A DNA stretch of 12,938 nt from NCBI GenBank assembly GCA_946965045.2, contig CAMPTO020000006.1:1-12938 (forward strand). The letters run 5' to 3'. How positions within the stretch are numbered: position 1 is the stretch's first letter; each line of letters opens with the position of its first letter. The translations under genes were made by a program, and so were the position numbers. Below are positions 1-12,659 of the stretch, piece after piece. The notes beneath the pieces are model-generated. The model was given only the letters and a program-made list of their open reading frames with translations. It was not told where the DNA came from and ran no database searches. The stretch is from Epithemia pelagica. Its lineage: Eukaryota > Protista > Bacillariophyta.

Positions 1-50
1 GAAGCAAAAAAACCCACACAACAACAGCAGAAGTTTAGAACCACATTCAG

Positions 51-87
51 ACCCTGACCCAACTCCAACAAGGGGCCCCTGTCTTGT
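51..87 (+). promoter_or_regulatory. 37-nt upstream element (Pol III-class), copy 1, upstream of U6
   Basis: ACCCTGACCCAACTCCAACAAGGGGCCCCTGTCTTGT; 32/37 identical to copies 3 and 4; ends 24-25 nt before U6. Confidence 0.8.
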
Positions 88-111
88 CAACCACCTTGTG
101 CATATATACTG

Positions 112-215
112 GACCCCAGAAATGGGACATCCGTTAAAATTGGATCGATACAGAGAAGATTAGCATGGTCCCTGCGCAAGGATGACACGCATTAATCGAG
201 AAAGTATCAACTTTT
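112..215 (+). ncRNA. U6: U6 snRNA
   Basis: ACAGAGA box 150-156, AGC triad 162-164, ISL GGTCCCTGCGCAAGGATGAC, T9 at 212-220; the 3' CGAGAAAGTAT pairs 10/11 with the U2 5' end; 5' end +/-1. Confidence 0.98.
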
Positions 216-387
216 TTTTTGTCCCCCGGATCACACGTATTTTTTACACTGGTGTCTTCTTCATGCTTCCCAGACCAACACATATGTGCAGACATACCCA
301 TCACCCACAGGTGGCAAGTGGCAGGCTGCAGTAACCCATTGAAATATTGGTTTCAAAAAACGACCATATGCTTTATGCTACTGGCAT

Positions 388-397
388 GCTTCCCTGA
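388..397 (+). promoter_or_regulatory. -48 snRNA-type upstream element of SL RNA copy 1
   Basis: GCTTCCCTGA, 47-48 nt upstream of the SL 5' end; same motif and spacing as U2/U3/U4/U5. Confidence 0.75.
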
Positions 398-434
398 GCA
401 TATACATGTCGAAAGCTGTGTAGAGAAAAAGAGC

Positions 435-546
435 AACCAACGATTTCTAAAGCTACAGTTTCTGTACTTCATTGGTATGGAAGCATGAAGATTACTCTTC
501 TCACACAACTTTGTCAAAACATGGCCGGTTTCGAAAGAGACTGGCC
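435..546 (+). ncRNA. Spliced-leader (SL) RNA, copy 1 (exon 435-474, donor GTATGG at 475)
   Basis: AACCAACGATTTCTAAAGCTACAGTTTCTGTACTTCATTG|GTATG carries the kinetoplastid/diplonemid CAGTTTCTGTACT..ATTG|GTATG core; GAAGA/TCTTC hairpin, Sm-like AACTTTG, GAAA-tetraloop 3' hairpin, T6 at 547-552. Confidence 0.95.
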
Positions 547-639
547 TTTTTTACGTTAGCATGATTGTCTTTGTGTGTCTTTGTGCAAAGCAAAAAAAAA
601 ACACACACAAGAAGTGAGGATCTTCAAAACCACGTTTTT

Positions 640-676
640 GACCTGACCCACCTCCAACTAGACAACCCTGTCTTGT
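640..676 (+). promoter_or_regulatory. 37-nt upstream element, copy 2, upstream of 7SL
   Basis: 34/37 identical to copies 3 and 4; ends 25-26 nt before the SRP RNA. Confidence 0.8.
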
Positions 677-701
677 ATTCCGACAATATGGTATCTATTG
701 A

Positions 702-1013
702 GCCGGGATGTGTTGGCTGCATCCTGAAACCCCTAGCTTCTGGGGGGGCAAGCTTCTCCAGAACTGGGCACTCTTTGAGGTGGACCAAAGGCACCTTCAA
801 CTTCTGTGTTGATGTGTTGTCCGTGTTAGTCTACTGTCCTGTTTGCGGCCTTGGTGTAAACCAGGGCAACAATCAGAGTGAAATGGGGTGAACCGGGCCA
901 GGCTGGTCTCACAGAGCAGCTCATAACTCCTGCAGTGGACAGTTCAAGGATCGCAGCACAGAGCAGAGTGAGGGTGTTTCCAACTCAATGGCTTGAACTG
1001 GAGAAGCGTTTCT
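702..1013 (+). ncRNA. SRP (7SL) RNA
   Basis: Alu-like 5' GCCGGG; helix 6 GCCTTGGT-GTAA-ACCAGGGC (848-867); helix 8 with CAGG (899-902) and AGCAG (915-919); GCTTCTCCAG/CTGGAGAAGC long-range helix; T6 at 1013-1018. Confidence 0.92.
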
Positions 1014-1176
1014 TTTTTACATTTTTCCATGTGAACATTGTTTCCACATCACCATACACATGTGTTGTTGATACACCCCACCACGTTGCCCAGACCATTC
1101 CTACCCACATTATTCACCACAAGTGGCATGTTTACCAGCACATGTTGGTGCTTAGAGCAATGTTAAGAAAAAGGGC

Positions 1177-1289
1177 AACCAACGATTTCTAAAGCTACAG
1201 TTTCTGTACTTCATTGGTATGGAAGCATGAAGATTATATTCTTCTCACACAACTTTGTCAAACATGGCCAGCCTCGAAAGAGACTGGCC
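1177..1289 (+). ncRNA. Spliced-leader (SL) RNA, copy 2 (exon 1177-1216)
   Basis: Exon identical to copy 1; intron part differs in the stem-II loop and stem III; T6 at 1290-1295; -48 motif is degenerate (GTTTACCAGC, 1130-1139). Confidence 0.93.
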
Positions 1290-1361
1290 TTTTTTACGTC
1301 ACCATGAGAAAAAAACATTCACACATATGATGCATGTACAAAGTGCACAGGTGTGTGTGTC

Positions 1362-1398
1362 ACCCTGACCCACCTCCAACAAGACAACCCTGTCTTGT
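1362..1398 (+). promoter_or_regulatory. 37-nt upstream element, copy 3
   Basis: ACCCTGACCCACCTCCAACAAGACAACCCTGTCTTGT; identical to copy 4. Confidence 0.8.
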
Positions 1399-1421
1399 TT
1401 TCCCATACTCTCCCTATGTTT

Positions 1422-1742
1422 GGGTGCTAAGTTAGTGTGCTACTTCGAAACCAAACAACTCGTTCAGCAACAGCTAAAACTTGAAAAGACCTTTCTTATC
1501 AGAAAATTCTTTACAATTTTTATGATGTGTCCTGCTGTGGCCTGATATGGCCCAAGGCGGAACCACTTTCATATGATGTAAATCCCGTACGTTCGTACAG
1601 AATATTACCCATGATGATTATTCTTACATTAGCGTGTAACACTAATTCTGACTGCGTTCTATTTCACACTTCAAATATTAGAACTGGATGTGGGGCTGCC
1701 AGTTTACTGGTGGTCCCGATCCAGCACACAACGCAAGCACCC
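1422..1742 (+). ncRNA. Orphan ~320-nt structured Pol III-class RNA, vault RNA-like candidate
   Basis: Starts 24 nt after the 37-nt element; GGGTGCT (1422-1428) pairs with AGCACCC (1736-1742); second stem GTT(A)GTGTGCT/AGCACACAAC; TACTTCGA at 1441-1448; T6 at 1743-1748. An RNA is likely; its identity is tentative. Confidence 0.65.
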
Positions 1743-1814
1743 TTTTTTATATTACCCCACCCAGTACCCCCCCTGTGTCTGTGTTGTTGCCTAAAAAAGC
1801 ATCACCTTTTACAG

Positions 1815-1824
1815 GCTTCCTTGT
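1815..1824 (+). promoter_or_regulatory. -48 snRNA-type element of an orphan small RNA
   Basis: GCTTCCTTGT; +48 lands on A1863. Confidence 0.5.
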
Positions 1825-1862
1825 GGGGAGTGTTCGGTCAAGTGATAGTGATGAAGAAGGAC

Positions 1863-1927
1863 AGGGGCGAGTTTTCTCGTGAAATGCTTTGAAGCCTCTG
1901 ACATTGAGAGGCTCGCTCCGACCTCTG
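1863..1927 (+). ncRNA. Orphan ~65-nt snRNA-class RNA candidate
   Basis: -48 motif; GGGGCGAG (1864-1871)/CTCGCTCC (1912-1919) stem; AGCCTCT/AGAGGCT hairpin (1893-1913); GTTTTTAA 3' signal like that of U3. Confidence 0.5.
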
Positions 1928-1957
1928 TTTTTAATAACCCTTACCGGTAACCACTGT

Positions 1958-1990
1958 GTATGTATGGTATGTATGGTATGTATGATATGT
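1958..1990. repeat. GTATGTATG microsatellite (3 units plus a degenerate unit)
   Basis: Direct reading. Confidence 0.85.
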
Positions 1991-2025
1991 TGCCTTTGTG
2001 TGTTTGTTTTTGTTTTGTTAAAAAA

Positions 2026-2215
2026 GAGGGTATGCCACTCCTGGATGTTGTGCAGCTCCAGGGCAACATGTGTGAACGGACCAGGTTGCCCTGGCGACCC
2101 GTCACCCCAATGAGAAATTGCGTTAATATCATCAGTGCACAAGGCACTGTATCAGATATTAAGCTGATAAGAACAGATAATACACTTGATCTTAGCCAAA
2201 AGGCCGAGAAGGTAT
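2026..2215 (-). ncRNA. U2: U2 snRNA
   Basis: Reverse complement begins ATACCTTCTCGGCCTTTTGGCTAAGATCAAGTGTATTATCTGTTCTTATCAG; stems IIa/IIb, III and IV present; ~190 nt; T6 follows. Confidence 0.97.
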
Positions 2216-2253
2216 GACTTCTTTTTAGTCCATACCAAATTCGACACCCATGT

Positions 2254-2263
2254 ACAGGGAAGC
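2254..2263 (-). promoter_or_regulatory. -48 element of U2
   Basis: GCTTCCCTGT exactly 48 nt upstream of 2215; near-duplicate at 2311-2330. Confidence 0.8.
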
Positions 2264-2364
2264 ATGATGATGATCAATATTACTAGGAAACAACAAGGCA
2301 AACAGATTACACACCCATGTCACAGGGAAGTGAGCGAAGGTGATGATCAATCGTAGTAAAAACA

Positions 2365-2507
2365 AGGCCGCCGAAGCAGCTACACAAATTGCCAATGTGG
2401 CAACGCCGAAGCGGCCCATGGCGGGAATTGGGTAGTTTTCAACCAGCAATCTCTCCACAGCGTCCCTATTTGGTCATTGCTTATGGAATTATCCCGAGCG
2501 CAAGAAT
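2365..2507 (-). ncRNA. U4: U4 snRNA
   Basis: 5' ATTCTTGCGC pairs with U6 GCGCAAGGAT; TTGCTGGTTGAAAAC (stem I); CCCGCCATG; Sm AATTTGTG; 3' GCTGC-TTCG-GCGGC; T5 follows. Confidence 0.96.
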
Positions 2508-2545
2508 ACCTCCTTTTCTCCCAGTCGTGTCACAAAGCTATGTCA

Positions 2546-2555
2546 ACAGGGAAGC
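2546..2555 (-). promoter_or_regulatory. -48 element of U4
   Basis: GCTTCCCTGT exactly 48 nt upstream of 2507. Confidence 0.8.
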
Positions 2556-2620
2556 GTGTTGGGGTGGTAACATAAAGACACCACGTAAAGCTAACACACC
2601 AGAACTACCACCACCAATGT

Positions 2621-2630
2621 GCCTCCCTGT
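2621..2630 (+). promoter_or_regulatory. -48 element of U3
   Basis: GCCTCCCTGT exactly 48 nt upstream of 2669. Confidence 0.8.
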
Positions 2631-2668
2631 AGACATCTGTGCAGCCGATAGGTGGAACAAACAAGGGC

Positions 2669-2878
2669 AAGACTGTACTCTACACAGGATCTGTTTTTGA
2701 GTGCATTCGTGTTGAAGATTGTTTTCTTCGGCACAAGACCAAAGCTGGATGATGACATAGGTTGGGCATGTGCAGCATGAGCACTTGCGATGATTGTCAC
2801 ATACTTCTTGTATTGTTTTGTCTCTCCCCTGTATGGCGCAGGGAAGAGTACCAGGCACAGCCCTTCCACTTACAGCTT
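2669..2878 (+). ncRNA. U3: U3 snoRNA
   Basis: 5' AAGACTGTACTC..AGGATC (GAC/A'/A boxes); C' GATGATGA at 2748-2755; B/C CATGAG..GATGA at 2776-2793; terminal stem AAGCTG/CAGCTT; 210 nt; T5 follows. Confidence 0.9.
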
Positions 2879-2980
2879 GTTTTTAAGAAAAACCTCAAAA
2901 AAGGCTTCACATTACTTTTTTCACCTTCAAGGACATCTTGATCAATCAAGAAGTTACCACACTATCCTCGCTCTCAACAT

Positions 2981-2990
2981 GCTTCCATGT
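2981..2990 (+). promoter_or_regulatory. -48 element of U5
   Basis: GCTTCCATGT exactly 48 nt upstream of 3029. Confidence 0.75.
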
Positions 2991-3028
2991 GTAGCAAAGT
3001 GCATACAGCAATAGAACAAAACAGAGCC

Positions 3029-3138
3029 ATATCACGGTTCTTGCCCATATCGAACTCATCTTTCGCCTTTTACTAAAGATGACCGTGGGTAAGAGCCACT
3101 AAGTGAAAGCATAATTTTTGAAGGGGCCTTTGTGTCTC
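3029..3138 (+). ncRNA. U5: U5 snRNA
   Basis: Loop 1 GCCTTTTAC (3065-3073) in an ATCTTT/AAAGAT stem; Sm AATTTTTG at 3113-3120; short 3' hairpin. Confidence 0.96.
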
Positions 3139-3166
3139 ATCTGTTTTAAGTCTTGACAACCACTAC

Positions 3167-3176
3167 GCTTCCCTGA
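3167..3176 (+). promoter_or_regulatory. -48 element of U1
   Basis: GCTTCCCTGA; +48 predicts a start at 3215. Confidence 0.7.
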
Positions 3177-3214
3177 AGGTGTTGGAGTTTCGCATGTTGT
3201 TAAACTCAGCTAGA

Positions 3215-3375
3215 GGTTACATACCTTACTGGTGTCTGACCTGATCAACAAGGGCGTCGACACACCAGTGGCCCTTGCATTGCACTGCGCAGGGGATACT
3301 GGTGGCACTAGCTTCGGCTGGCTTGCACAGTGAAATTTTTGACAGCGGCGGTGCTGTGCTTTGCACAAACCCGCC
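3215..3375 (+). ncRNA. U1: U1 snRNA
   Basis: ACATACCT at 3219-3226; helix H ACTG/CAGT (3228-3231/3328-3331); 70K-like loop GATCAACAAG; U1A loop ATTGCACTGC; Sm AAATTTTTG at 3333-3341; GGCGG/CCGCC stem IV; 5' end 3214-3217. Confidence 0.93.
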
Positions 3376-3598
3376 TTTTTAAACAAACAAACCAAAACAA
3401 ACGTGATCACACAAACCATCATGTTACCCAGTAAACCCAGTAAACCCAGCACACTGGTCTAGAGGGATCGACCACTGAGTGGTGACCTGTGAGCACACAG
3501 GCACCTGCTCCGATGCAGTAGTGCAGCGCACTAAGTGCTGTGCTAAGGACTGGCCAAACTTGTTAAACCTGCTGACCCACAAACCGGTTTTCACAACC

Positions 3599-3643
3599 GA
3601 AGCAAAAACAAGCTCAGAAATAAAAAGCTCTTCAAAGGTTTTC
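3599..3643 (+). repeat. 45-nt block upstream of 5S copy 1
   Basis: Identical to 4354-4398; both end 17 nt before the 5S gene. Confidence 0.85.
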
Positions 3644-3660
3644 GAACCTGACTCAGTATT

Positions 3661-3780
3661 GGATTCGGCCATACTCTGGTGAATACACCTCATCCCGCCT
3701 GATTTGAGAAGTTAAGCACCAGCAGGCCTGGATAGTACTGGCGTGGGTGACCAGCTGGGAAGTCCGGGTGCTTGAATCCT
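3661..3780 (+). rRNA. 5S rRNA, copy 1
   Basis: GGATTCGGCCATAC...GAAGTTAAGC...TAGTACT...GGGAAGTCC...GAATCC; helix I GGATTC/GAATCC; T-run follows. Confidence 0.98.
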
Positions 3781-3824
3781 TTTTGCTTTTCTTCCGTGTT
3801 GGTGTGTGGTTTTAGGACATCCAG

Positions 3825-3861
3825 ACCCTGACCCACCTCCAACAAGACAACCCTGTCTTGT
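3825..3861 (+). promoter_or_regulatory. 37-nt upstream element, copy 4
   Basis: 37/37 identical to copy 3; no known RNA gene downstream. Confidence 0.8.
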
Positions 3862-3885
3862 ATCCCTGTGTTTGTTGCACTATCC

Positions 3886-4262
3886 AGAGAGCAGAAATGA
3901 GGGGAGACTACACCACCGACGGTGCTTCAGCCTACAGGAGCATGCTGGAATGTGAATGCTGCATGACAGCATTCACAATTTCACCTTTGGTGAGATGGAG
4001 ATGAGCGCAAAGGTGCAAAAATGCACAACAAAAACTGAGGAAGAGGCATCCATACTCCCCAGAAGGGACGTGCGCACCTGCAGCCAAAAATTCTCCTGTG
4101 CTTAATATCATGCGCGCTGGGGATGCCGAAATAGCTAAACTGTTGCAAGAAGTGGGACTAATTCCCAGGCAGTTGCCCTGTACAACATGCAAGTCCACAA
4201 TGCCAGAAACACTGTACTGGACACCAAGATACTCCAAGAAGATCGCAAACTGGCCTTATTTT
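3886..4262 (+). ncRNA. Orphan Pol III-class transcript candidate (~375 nt)
   Basis: Starts 25 nt after the element; first T4 at 4259-4262; 9-bp end-closing helix 3894-3902/4254-4262; perfect 11-bp hairpin 3951-3977. Alternatively a decayed transposase (see findings). Confidence 0.4.
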
Positions 4263-4353
4263 AGGTGAAATGACCTAATGCAGAGTGCAGCGGAACAGGG
4301 GAGACAAATAAAGTTTCCTGTACCATGCAACACCCAAGACCTTTTGCACAAGT

Positions 4354-4398
4354 GAAGCAAAAACAAGCTCAGAAATAAAAAGCTCTTCAAAGGTTTTC
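4354..4398 (+). repeat. 45-nt block upstream of 5S copy 2
   Basis: Identical to 3599-3643. Confidence 0.85.
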
Positions 4399-4415
4399 CA
4401 CCCAGACCCATTATT

Positions 4416-4535
4416 GGATTCGGCCATACTCTGGTGAATACACCTCATCCCGCCTGATTTGAGAAGTTAAGCACCAGCAGGCCTGGATAGTACTGGCGTG
4501 GGTGACCAGCTGGGAAGTCCGGGTGCTTGAATCCT
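4416..4535 (+). rRNA. 5S rRNA, copy 2
   Basis: Identical to copy 1; T6 follows. Confidence 0.98.
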
Positions 4536-4617
4536 TTTTTCCTTATTTGTGGTGTAACACACAGAAGTTGGTTGAAAAGTGAACTGATAGTATTCAGCGC
4601 AAAGCATGATTATTGAA

Positions 4618-4689
4618 GGGTATATAGCTCAGTGGTAGAGCATTCGGCTGCAGTCCGAACGGTCCCTGGTTCGAACCCGGGTGTGCCCT
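4618..4689 (+). tRNA. tRNA-Cys(GCA)
   Basis: Cloverleaf; TTCGG-CTGCAGT-CCGAA; U73. Confidence 0.97.
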
Positions 4690-9176: not shown

Positions 9177-9416
9177 CTCTCTTTTTGCGATTGACAAAAG
9201 CAAAACAATATGGTTTCGGACAGTTTCAGGTCAGTCACAAACTCGTTCAAAACGAAAAAGTGGAAATGATATGTACTCTTTCTTGTGTAAGGATTCTTAG
9301 TGGAGAAAGAAATTTTTTGTCTGATGCCGGTTTTTGCTCGACATAGTAAGTCAGTTCAGTCACAACTTCCGTCACAATCGAAAAAAAAATTTGACTCATA
9401 TGTTTATAAACCCATG

Positions 9417-9653
9417 CTGACTTACATGTTTATTTGTTCACAAAAATCCCAGTTCATAAACATGTAAGTCAGTATGGCCGCTCTGGTGGCCGCATGTTTT
9501 TGGGTTAACTTACGTGTTTATGAAAAACCTGACTTACATGTTTATTTGTTCACAAAATTCCCTGGGTTAATAACCATGTAAGTCAGGTTTTTCATAACCA
9601 TGTAAGTCAGGTTGGGACTACAACATGTTCATAAACCCAACCTGACTTACATG
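9417..9653. repeat. Array of three perfect inverted repeats built on the 12-mer CTGACTTACATG
   Basis: 17 bp 9417-9433/9456-9472; 23 bp 9518-9540/9575-9597; 18 bp 9599-9616/9636-9653. Confidence 0.92.
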
Positions 9654-9722
9654 TATATTTCTTCACAAAATTCCCAAGATATGGCCGGTGCACTGGTCAG
9701 AGACATCACGTTTGCGGGCCAA

Positions 9723-9836
9723 CCCCCCTGTGCGCCCGATTAGCTTACCCCCCTGTGCGCCCGATTAGGAATACCCCCCTGTGCGCCCGATTAGGGATCC
9801 CCCTGTGCGCCCGATTAGCTTACCCCCTGTGCGCCC
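9723..9836. repeat. GC-rich ~25-nt tandem repeat C5-6TGTGCGCCCGATTAG, 4 full units plus 1 partial
   Basis: Units at 9723, 9748, 9774, 9799 and 9823, separated by CTTA/GAATA/GGAT/CTTA. Confidence 0.93.
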
Positions 9837-9862
9837 ACCTACCTAGTCACTGTGACCAGGTG

Positions 9863-12139: not shown

Positions 12140-12239
12140 TTTTTTTGCCTTATTTTGTTGATTATTTTTTGGTTGGGCCAGTTAACACACAAAAATATGA
12201 ACTGGCACCATTGTGCAGTGCCTGCGATGAGGATGTGTG

Positions 12240-12659
12240 TGATGGTCCAATTGGCGAGTCTGATGTCATAATGTGTTCAGGAACATCCAAATGACCCATT
12301 TTCCCAACGTTTTCACATTTTTGAGCATTTTGCTATTACGCAATAGTGGTACAATAGGCATTTTACTGGGTCATTTTAACCAACTCTATCAGGACACTTC
12401 TGATGCTCCAATTGGCGATTCTGACCTCATAATGGCTTCATGAGCAGCCGAATAACCCGTTTTCCAAATATTTTCACATTTTTGAACATTTTGCCATTCG
12501 TGGAATGGTGGCACAAAAGTCATTTTACTGGGTCATTTTCGCCAACTCGATCAGGGGACACTTCTGGTGCTCCAATTTGCGGTTCTGACCTCATAATGGA
12601 TTCAAGAGCACCCAAATAACCCATTTTCCCAACGTTTTCACATTTTTGACCATTTTGCT
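12240..12659. repeat. ~161-164-nt imperfect tandem repeat, ~2.6 copies
   Basis: CCAATT anchors at 12247, 12408 and 12572; TTTTCACATTTTTGA and CATTTTACTGGGTCATTTT recur. Confidence 0.9.

Follow-up and report, generated by a model that had tools for sequence, protein, structure and literature searches.

In trypanosomatids spliced leader (SL) RNA is made by RNA polymerase II (Pol II) with SNAPc, whereas the U snRNAs are Pol III products transcribed from tRNA-linked promoters (PMC5829719, PMC4950102), a contrast which the first-pass annotation had pointed out and which the literature bears out. The stretch of DNA analysed here (the window, 12.9 kb) carries SL RNA, U snRNA and U3 genes within one island of small-RNA genes, and raises the question whether these genes share one promoter type and what such sharing would say about their ancestry.

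SL RNA genes and the source of the contig

Two SL RNA genes are present in the window:

435-552, plus strand: SL1 RNA gene, with a 40-nt exon starting AACCAACG, a GTATGG splice donor and three stem-loops
1177-1295, plus strand: SL2 RNA gene, with an exon identical to that of SL1; a T6 run (1290-1295) is followed by AC

Both fit the kinetoplastid type, i.e. they contain an exon of the form AAC(T/C)AACG...CAGTTTCTGTACT...ATTG (39-41 nt within the type), a GT donor and three stem-loops as well as the single-stranded Sm-like site that this type requires, and their folds have z-scores of -4.6 (SL1) and -4.2 (SL2). SL1, too, ends in a T6 run (547-552) followed by AC, and by analogy with kinetoplastid SL RNA genes the T6 runs after the last stem-loop may act as terminators (PMC1888695). 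The two copies lie 742 bp apart with the SRP RNA gene between them, and no other SL copy was found in the 60.5-Mb assembly that contains the contig. Hence there is no head-to-tail arrangement; the SL genes are dispersed in a mixed small-RNA island, whereas those of kinetoplastids form a tandem array.

The SL exon is closest to the SL of Diplonema, and the contig comes from a diplonemid-like euglenozoan, an island of its small-RNA genes having been assembled together with the genome of an alga. In this algal assembly, to which the contig (C21) is foreign, U2 and U6 are encoded by separate genes that differ from those of the window; the contig should be flagged as foreign DNA. Likewise, the contigs of MAG CBDCEV01 that carry these genes and are labelled Hyphomicrobiales are mis-binned eukaryotic DNA. 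No exact window-type SL was found in prokaryote genome records; a broader pattern led to the closest relative found, here called H. Relatives were compared by local BLAST.

The -48 box and the genes downstream of it

The pattern GCYTCCHTGW has seven exact matches in the window, beginning at 388, 1815, 2621, 2981 and 3167 on the plus and at 2263 and 2555 on the minus strand, and the remaining 8 kb of the contig contains no further exact copy. Among 200 dinucleotide shuffles the matches averaged 0.30 and never exceeded two. An unbiased motif search returned GCTTCC at -48 in 6-7 of the 8 upstream regions, which again none of 200 shuffles equalled. The boxes and their genes are:

388-397, plus: box of SL1, GCTTCCCTGA, exact match, 47 nt upstream of the SL1 start
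1130-1139, plus: diverged box of SL2, GTTTACCAGC, 6/10 match, at the aligned position homologous to the SL1 box
1815-1824, plus: box of an orphan RNA, GCTTCCTTGT, exact match
~1863-1932, plus: orphan RNA of ~65 nt, same promoter class; ends T5 then AA
2020-2215, minus: U2 snRNA gene, Rfam 141.6 bits; T6 then AA at 2020-2025
2254-2263, minus: box of U2, GCTTCCCTGT, exact match, 48 nt from the start
2322-2331, minus: near-copy of the box, ACTTCCCTGT, with flanks resembling the U2 promoter
2358-2507, minus: U4 snRNA gene, Rfam 63.3 bits; T5 then AC at 2358-2362
2546-2555, minus: box of U4, GCTTCCCTGT, exact match, 48 nt from the start
2621-2630, plus: box of U3, GCCTCCCTGT, exact match, 48 nt from the start
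2669-2884, plus: U3 snoRNA gene; ends T5 then AA, internal T5 at +26
2981-2990, plus: box of U5, GCTTCCATGT, exact match, 48-49 nt from the start
3029-3147, plus: U5 snRNA gene, Rfam 85.8 bits; ends T4 then AA, internal T4 and T5 runs
3167-3176, plus: box of U1, GCTTCCCTGA, exact match
3215-3380, plus: U1 snRNA gene; ends T5 then AA, internal T5 in the Sm site

Each of the seven boxes precedes an RNA 5' end by 47-50 nt, the gene starts having been set independently of the box by Rfam models and by the point where similarity to relatives begins. The spacings given in the first-pass annotation are confirmed, i.e. the starts at 2215 (U2), 2507 (U4), 2669 (U3) and 3029/3030 (U5) yield the claimed 48 nt, or 48-49 nt for U5, and the SL1 start at 435 yields 47 nt, within the 47-48 nt proposed. 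Its prediction of a U1 start at 3215 also proved right, as similarity to H begins at exactly this position and the Rfam match at 3217. The U1 match scores 68 bits against a cut-off of 69.5 bits (E = 7.6e-16), and U3 matches Plant_U3 with 35 bits (E = 8e-7), under the family cut-off, its 5' 129 nt being 91-97% identical in relatives. The ~65-nt orphan matched no Rfam family, gave no homologue in the relatives and folds unexceptionally (z = -1.5); a C/D-box identity over 1847-1903 was discarded, the match being weak (E = 1.3).

Might the 10-mer be no transcription signal at all, but the remnant of a segmental duplication or a site of another kind, e.g. for processing or a chromatin boundary? Part of the U2 promoter is indeed duplicated, at 2311-2351; the duplicate comprises the near-copy ACTTCCCTGT, and no gene lies 48 nt downstream of it. 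However, the flanks of the seven boxes are no more alike from gene to gene than unrelated sequences (31% identity), and thus the boxes are not duplication leftovers. Moreover, box orientation follows gene orientation in every case and on both strands, the distance from box to RNA 5' end varies by only 1-3 nt over seven different RNAs, and exact copies are lacking from the other 8 kb of the contig, all of which makes a non-promoter role very improbable.

The common -48 box therefore suggests that the SL1, U1-U5 and U3 genes all use one promoter type. As in promoters with a proximal sequence element (PSE), a conserved element stands at a fixed distance (about 45-65 nt in this class) amid unrelated flanks and is common to the Sm-class genes U1, U2, U4 and U5. 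Thus, the box is probably a PSE-like, fast-evolving element that belongs to a single snRNA-type promoter class of a diplonemid-like organism and fixes the start of transcription. In this model GCYTCCHTGW would be the upstream core element of one external promoter and the functional counterpart of the PSE, would set the start 47-48 nt downstream, at an A after a pyrimidine, and would act together with a purine-rich tract at -15 to -3. This class would serve one SL RNA gene, U1, U2, U4, U5, U3 and the orphan 65-nt RNA, its genes ending in T4-6 and then AA or AC, and a second class, marked by a 37-nt element, would serve U6, SRP RNA and two other RNAs.

Accompanying signals and the choice of polymerase

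The tract at -15 to -3 contains 11-13 purines in 13 positions in six of the seven box-class genes, against 49% purines in the whole window, and immediately ahead of the start SL and U snRNA genes have RGGNY|A in the window, in H and in a further related lineage, L020, whereas TATT(R)|G is found there in U6, SRP and 5S genes. That the genes end in T4-T6, often with AA or AC behind, had been noted from the start and applies to all eight genes of the class, SL2 included. Among tRNA genes only 3 of 33 show this context (p = 1.7e-6), although AA/AC is not kept in L020 or in another lineage, L040. Both the purine-rich tract and the T4-6-AA/AC end are specific to the box gene class. A consistent TATA box was found neither in this class nor in that of the 37-nt element.

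The 37-nt element defines the contrast class:

51-87, plus: 37-nt element of U6, whose core lies at 134-192
640-677, plus: 37-nt element of SRP RNA, whose gene lies at 702-1009
1362-1398, plus: 37-nt element of an orphan RNA of ~320 nt at ~1420-1745
3825-3861, plus: 37-nt element upstream of a sequence at ~3885-4260

Both ends of the ~320-nt orphan are conserved in H; permissive Rfam scans of 1863-1932, ~1420-1745 and ~3885-4260 gave nothing credible. As U6 and SRP RNA carry this different element and U6 does not share the -48 box, SL RNA groups by promoter type with the Sm-class snRNAs. The CCCTG core within the 37-nt element had been taken as a sign that one SNAPc-like factor serves both classes, but this reading has to be abandoned: the overlap is limited to CCCTG(T), is at chance level (estimated p ~0.4 for a shared 5-mer and ~0.08 for the 6-mer CCCTGT) and is out of register, the core lying 8-9 nt nearer the start in the U6/SRP class than in the box class.

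The T-runs at every 3' end count against our model, being typical of Pol III genes as well. The box might then be an external Pol III element like that of vertebrate type 3 promoters, so that the U snRNAs, and possibly SL RNA, would be made by Pol III without an upstream tRNA gene and the T4-6 runs would be ordinary terminators. All trypanosomatid snRNAs are indeed Pol III products (PMC4950102, PMC5829719), plants and trypanosomatids use Pol III for U3 (PMC2784804), and neither SL transcript of the window contains an internal run of at least four T. On the other hand, such internal runs occur at 7.1 per kb in the box class versus 0.58 per kb in the Pol III-type genes (tRNA, 5S, SRP and U6), i.e. 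at 12 times their density (p = 4e-4), with T5 in U1, U3 and U5, as long as the terminal runs of these very genes, and T4 in U2 and the ~65-nt orphan. This argument is weakened by the ~320-nt orphan of the U6/SRP class, as it has an internal T5, too. Further points against Pol III are the class-specific AA/AC context of the terminal run, which differs from that of tRNA genes, the different promoter that U6 and SRP have on this contig, the internal T5 ahead of the terminal T4 in the SL RNA of L040, and the production of SL RNA by Pol II in every case tested (PMC1888695, PMC11822377). Altogether we regard Pol III transcription from the box as unlikely, and lean slightly towards Pol II as the enzyme that transcribes the box class, which may terminate at T tracts as in kinetoplastid SL RNA genes. 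The box itself may be bound by a SNAPc-like factor.

Related lineages and known promoters

Within the class SL2 is the exception. It shares the SL1 exon without any difference and appears functional, yet its box agrees with the pattern at no more than 6 of 10 positions, which is at odds with our model. This gene keeps TGGCATG (-55 to -49), the purine tract and GCAAT at -20, the latter resembling the -21 box of relatives. The box could thus serve U snRNA and U3 genes only, SL genes relying on TGGCATG, the purine tract, the initiator and perhaps the exon; the box of SL1 would have been gained secondarily, e.g. by conversion, and its sharing would therefore say little about ancestry. In line with this, the SL gene of L020 carries GCTGACCAGA where the box would be, which is nearer to the SL2 version than to the box, GGCAC or GGCAT occurs at -60 to -45 upstream of 11 of 30 metagenomic SL genes, and in H the promoters of SL and U snRNA genes are alike only in the last ~6 nt. 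However, the SL1 box is perfect and at the right distance, for which the chance in one 10-nt slot is ~1e-5 as estimated from the pattern degeneracy, SL and U snRNA genes have the same initiator region in three lineages, and in L020 and L040 a lineage-specific motif is found in both gene types. We therefore consider a box confined to U snRNA and U3 genes improbable and retain the common promoter class.

The first-pass annotation had proposed a motif search upstream of these genes in related genomes, and its outcome is mixed. Related loci totalling ~330 kb contain no -48 box save for two chance matches, and H lacks it; being found in no sampled relative, the box itself is lineage-specific and not ancestral. 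Position-fixed motifs do occur in three related lineages, a different one in each; two of them are common to SL and U snRNA genes and one is restricted to U snRNA genes. Both shared motifs belong to diplonemid-like lineages: L040 has GCGGC(A) at about -56 (also written -56 GCGGCAC) in five of six genes including SL, with none of 200 shuffles as good, and L020 has GCAAC at -21, exact in four of six genes and as RCAAC in all six, again including SL. The U snRNA box of H, CAACGG at -23, is not found upstream of the H SL genes, and thus sharing is not universal in the clade. In the four genes available from L012 no significant shared motif was detected. The motif thus appears to turn over rapidly between lineages, and in concert across the gene class, which is reminiscent of insect PSEs, which also evolve fast and lineage by lineage (PMC1761439). 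The idea of a single ancestral snRNA gene class that includes SL RNA stands insofar as SL1 groups with U1-U5 and U3, but is limited by the poor box of SL2, the unshared motif in H and the lineage specificity of the box.

In animals and plants a PSE or upstream sequence element (USE) is common to Pol II and Pol III snRNA genes, the polymerase being set by a TATA box or by spacing. The present layout is similar in that U1, U2, U4 and U5 (and U3) are split from U6 and other Pol III small RNAs, but in contrast to the animal PSE the element is not shared with U6.

The nematode PSE lies at about -65 to -45 and has a motif unrelated to the one at -48 described here. In Caenorhabditis elegans it serves snRNA, SL2 and SmY genes (PMC1474057), and nematode SL1 is made by Pol II beside Pol III-made 5S genes (PMC11822377). 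The nematode system (UM1/PSE) and ours have in common that one position-fixed upstream element serves SL, Sm-class U snRNA and small orphan RNA genes, the latter being of Sm type in nematodes (PMC1474057). They differ in that every gene here ends in a T-run with AA/AC rather than in a 3' box, in the phylum, Euglenozoa, and in that binding of SNAPc is a matter of inference in our case. A promoter type shared by SL and U snRNA genes is thus of a kind already known from nematodes, and the present motif is a new variant; an incomplete literature search, which is no proof of novelty, returned no prior description of these SL sequences or of diplonemid snRNA promoters.

Among kinetoplastids the SL RNA genes depend on Pol II and SNAPc and terminate at T tracts (PMC1888695, PMC5829719). 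Their promoter, to which tSNAPc binds, is bipartite with elements around -60 and -30. The closely related SL RNA, the external promoter in two parts (box plus proximal tract) and the T tract as 3' signal are shared with the window, but the elements are located at -48 and -15 to -3 instead of -67/-58 and -40/-31, and the trypanosomatid SL promoter serves SL RNA only, whereas the same box here also precedes U1-U5 and U3. The trypanosomatid Pol III genes for U snRNAs, U3 and 7SL resemble the island in the RNAs encoded (U1-U5, U3), in their T-run ends and in a clustering with tRNA genes on a larger scale. Their promoters, however, need a divergent tRNA gene or A/B boxes ~95-105 bp upstream, unlike the dedicated 10-nt box (PMC4950102, PMC2784804). 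No tRNA gene was found by ARAGORN and Rfam in 1-4600, the nearest lying at 4618, and no tRNA or tRNA-like A/B boxes occur within 100 bp upstream of any box-class gene; these U snRNA genes must therefore rely on a promoter other than the tRNA-linked Pol III type of trypanosomatids.

Textbooks present trypanosomatids as an oddity: all of their U snRNAs are transcribed by Pol III from tRNA-linked promoters, and only SL RNA retains a Pol II/SNAPc promoter. We tentatively speculate, although the odds are somewhat against it as a whole, that the genes for SL RNA, U3 and all Sm-class U snRNAs of diplonemid-like euglenozoans constitute one Pol II-transcribed, SNAPc-type, T-tract-terminating class, that this was the ancestral euglenozoan state, that the trypanosomatid U snRNAs moved later to tRNA-linked Pol III transcription, and that the motif is replaced wholesale and in concert between close lineages. 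The sister group of trypanosomatids here has a conventional two-class layout with SL RNA in the U1-U5/U3 class. The rearrangement in trypanosomatids would accordingly be younger than their split from this group, and nematodes would no longer be the only phylum in which SL RNA is linked to the transcription apparatus of the Sm snRNAs. Finally, the four lineage-specific motifs form a natural series in which to follow how the promoter element of an entire gene class co-evolves with its factor.

Small-RNA genes of the window and source of the contig

A dense island of small-RNA genes occupies the first 4.6 kb; the remaining 8 kb of the window contain 33 tRNA genes, the tRNA gene scan finding none within positions 1-4600.

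Small-RNA genes of the window
112-217, U6 (Rfam, above cut-off)
435 (predicted start), spliced-leader RNA gene SL1
702-1009, SRP RNA (Rfam, above cut-off)
1177 (predicted start), spliced-leader RNA gene SL2
1420-1745, orphan RNA of ~320 nt behind a 37-nt element
1863-1932, orphan RNA of ~65 nt behind the seventh copy of the box GCYTCCHTGW, at 1815
2025-2215, minus strand, U2 (Rfam, above cut-off)
2368-2507, minus strand, U4 (Rfam, above cut-off)
2669-2878, U3 (Rfam, relaxed threshold; E = 8e-7)
3030-3140, U5 (Rfam, above cut-off)
3217-3375, U1 (Rfam, relaxed threshold; 68 bits vs the 69.5-bit cut-off, E = 7.6e-16)
3575-3789 and 4330-4544, the two copies of a 215-nt repeat (93% identical, 755 bp apart), each with a 5S gene (Rfam, above cut-off)

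The exon of SL1 and SL2 comprises 40 nt, opens with AACCAACGATTT and is followed by GTATGG, and both RNAs show the classic three stem-loops (fold z = -4.6 and -4.2). The ~320-nt orphan RNA (1420-1745) matches no Rfam family, and its interior has motifs resembling a C box (ATGATGA) and a D box (CTGA) as well as an internal T5; we regard it as a real gene because both its ends (1413-1458 and 1721-1752) are kept at locus L076 of lineage H, a diplonemid-like relative. The 5S genes have no 37-nt element directly upstream, and their starts read ATT followed by GGAT, as in H. The tRNA gene region also holds three tandem arrays, one of five GC-rich 24-26-nt units at 9722-9851, one of three ~112-nt units at 9400-9676 and one of three ~162-nt units at 12231-12658.

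The window is the entire contig, one of 23 in an assembly of 60.5 Mb. U6 and U2 genes of a separate set are present on the main chromosomes; the U2 genes there are only 60% identical to that of the window, differ in their upstream element and lack a T-run, and neither the SL genes nor the 37-nt element can be found anywhere else in the assembly. Moreover, 32-92% of the window's sampled words occur in runs that bear the labels of at least seven organisms and come from an equal number of studies, and none occurs in other runs of those same studies. The share is 71-92% in eight DNA runs and 32-47% for two further strains. Finally, the SL exon is closest to that of Diplonema (PMC3795323). We conclude that the contig is foreign to the alga and that DNA of a diplonemid-like heterotroph was co-assembled here.

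The -48 box and its gene class

GCYTCCHTGW has seven exact matches in the window, all oriented toward a gene, vs 0.30 expected and a maximum of two in 200 shuffles. Predicted RNA starts were placed without the motif, by the ends of the Rfam models and the onset of similarity to four related lineages; similarity to H sets in 6 nt upstream of the start for U3 and SL, 3 nt for U4 and 1 nt for U2. The box lies 47 nt from the start of SL1, 48 nt from those of U2, U4 and U3, 48-49 nt from that of U5 and 48-50 nt from that of U1, so that the fixed spacing of ~48 nt, which the first-pass annotation had claimed for SL1 and U1-U5, holds with independently placed starts; the U1 start predicted there is exactly where similarity to H begins, at 3215. 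A blind position-fixed k-mer search of eight upstream regions also returned GCTTCC at -48, a result equalled in 0/200 shuffles. As the sequences flanking the boxes are only 31% identical between genes, the boxes are not leftovers of duplication. A near-copy at 2322-2331 (minus strand) is part of a partly duplicated U2 promoter. SL2, whose exon is identical to that of SL1, has GTTTACCAGC at the place homologous to the SL1 box and matches only 6/10 positions; thus, the sharing of the box by SL rests on one of the two SL genes.

We consider it quite probable that the box is a functional promoter element, and it would then be the PSE-like core of an external promoter of the snRNA type. Its class comprises SL, U1, U2, U4, U5 and U3 together with a small orphan RNA, whereas the 37-nt element precedes U6, SRP RNA and two other RNAs, a division that matches the Pol II/Pol III gene split of animals. 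The CCCTG core found in both elements had been noted as what a common SNAPc-like factor would lead one to expect. However, by our estimate a motif of 10 nt shares a 5-mer with an element of 37 nt by chance in ~40% of cases and the 6-mer CCCTGT in about 8%, and the position of the core differs between the classes (-44 vs -35/-36); this chance-level, displaced overlap is therefore not counted as evidence.

Further features set the box class apart. The tract from -15 to -3 contains 11-13 purines in 13 positions in six of seven genes and is specific to this class. All eight genes end in a T4-T6 run, a feature noted in the first pass, and in each of them AA or AC follows the run, an ending shared by 3/33 tRNA genes (p = 1.7e-6). 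In the window, H and lineage L020, RGGNY directly precedes the initial A of the SL and U snRNA genes; U6, SRP and 5S genes have TATT(R) before a G at this place.

In trypanosomatids all snRNAs are Pol III transcripts, whose promoters rely on a tRNA gene lying upstream in divergent orientation (PMC4950102, PMC2784804), an arrangement absent from the window, where positions 1-4600 are devoid of tRNA genes. The 3' T-runs alone do not indicate Pol III, since the kinetoplastid SL RNA genes, which depend on Pol II and SNAPc, also terminate at T-tracts (PMC1888695, PMC5829719). Moreover, internal runs of at least four T are 12 times denser in the box class than in tRNA, 5S, SRP and U6 genes (p = 4e-4), and in U1, U3 and U5 internal T5 runs match the terminal run in length, which argues against plain Pol III termination. 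As judged from sequence, this argument is only moderately strong, because an internal T5 also occurs in one RNA of the U6/SRP class and because Sm sites are sequence-constrained; hence we lean only slightly toward Pol II as the polymerase that may transcribe the box class.

Related lineages and turnover of the motif

When sequence records were scanned with a pattern for SL exons of the diplonemid type, 61 metagenome loci and, in genome records of prokaryotes, 12 loci were obtained, several with the same kind of island (SL, SRP, U6, U1, U2, U4, U5, U3, 5S, tRNA). The island recurs with shuffled gene order in the window, L049, L063, L031 and L076, all those small-RNA genes and dozens of tRNA genes lying within a few kb, and in the window U5 follows U3, reminiscent of the linkage of these two genes in Euglena (PMC2784804). 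The closest relative found, H (U1 92%, U2 95%, U3 91% and 5S 98% identical to the window), is represented by contigs 9, 67 and 76 of MAG CBDCEV01 (L076, L077, L078, L081, L082, L085, L087), which carry multi-copy SL RNA genes and U1, U2, U3, U4, U5, SRP and 5S, 81-98% identical to the window. These contigs are eukaryotic, and the Hyphomicrobiales label of the MAG is a binning error.

A search of upstream regions in relatives, proposed in the first pass, recovered a position-fixed motif in each lineage listed below, but not GCYTCCHTGW itself, which is present in no relative (two chance hits in ~330 kb of related loci).

Upstream motifs in related lineages
H: CAACGG within CTAASCAACGGTTT, at -23, in all five U snRNA/U3 genes (0/200 shuffles); SL genes without it
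L020: RCAAC, at about -21, in 6/6 genes including SL; exact GCAAC in 4/6 (1/200 shuffles)
L040: GCGGC(A), at about -56, in 5/6 genes including SL (0/200 shuffles)

Each lineage has its own position-fixed motif; the principle of one promoter class for SL and Sm-class snRNA genes recurs, and the motif itself turns over quickly between lineages, as reported for insect PSEs (PMC1761439). GCAAT, found at -20/-21 in SL2 and U5 of the window, appears to be what is left of the -21 box. H is an exception in that its SL and U snRNA promoters share little outside the initiator region. Myb proteins recognize the consensus YAACKG, which CAACGG in H fits; the motif would thus suit a Myb-domain SNAPc subunit. 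The H U snRNA box, TAACCAACGGTTT at -27 to -12, includes CAACGG and agrees at 11/12 positions with the opening 12 nt of the SL exon, AACCAACGATTT (upstream regions in L076:2799-4289 compared with window positions 435-446), and a copy of the exon start lies at about -75 in many SL genes of H.

Among the loci are ~25 AT-rich contigs (25-48% GC; L014-L018, L021, L024, L025, L030, L032, L035, L036, L042-L047, L052, L057, L061, L067, L069, L070, and also L083) with a complete 39-nt diplonemid SL exon and no intron behind it. In most of them A(6-9)(T)TGA(A/T)TTTTGCTATA is conserved at a fixed distance upstream of the exon, a motif that resembles the mimivirus early promoter AAAATTGA. After a further 8-68 nt, an ATG opens an ORF of 80-340 aa; L025 has tightly packed ORFs, including a SNF2-type helicase and ankyrin repeats, and other leader-linked ORFs contain RING or DUF285 domains. 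These contigs may carry giant-virus genes that encode the host spliced leader directly, without trans-splicing, for which we found no published description.

Among known systems, the PSE of nematodes, an element common to U snRNA, SL and SmY genes (PMC1474057), comes nearest to the box class. For Euglenozoa, the literature searched yielded no account of snRNA or SL promoters in diplonemids; SL-5S-U2 repeats are described in the genome paper on Diplonema papillatum (PMC10161547), which contains no promoter analysis. The main value of the box class lies in polarising the Pol III oddity of trypanosomatids and in the concerted turnover of the promoter motif.
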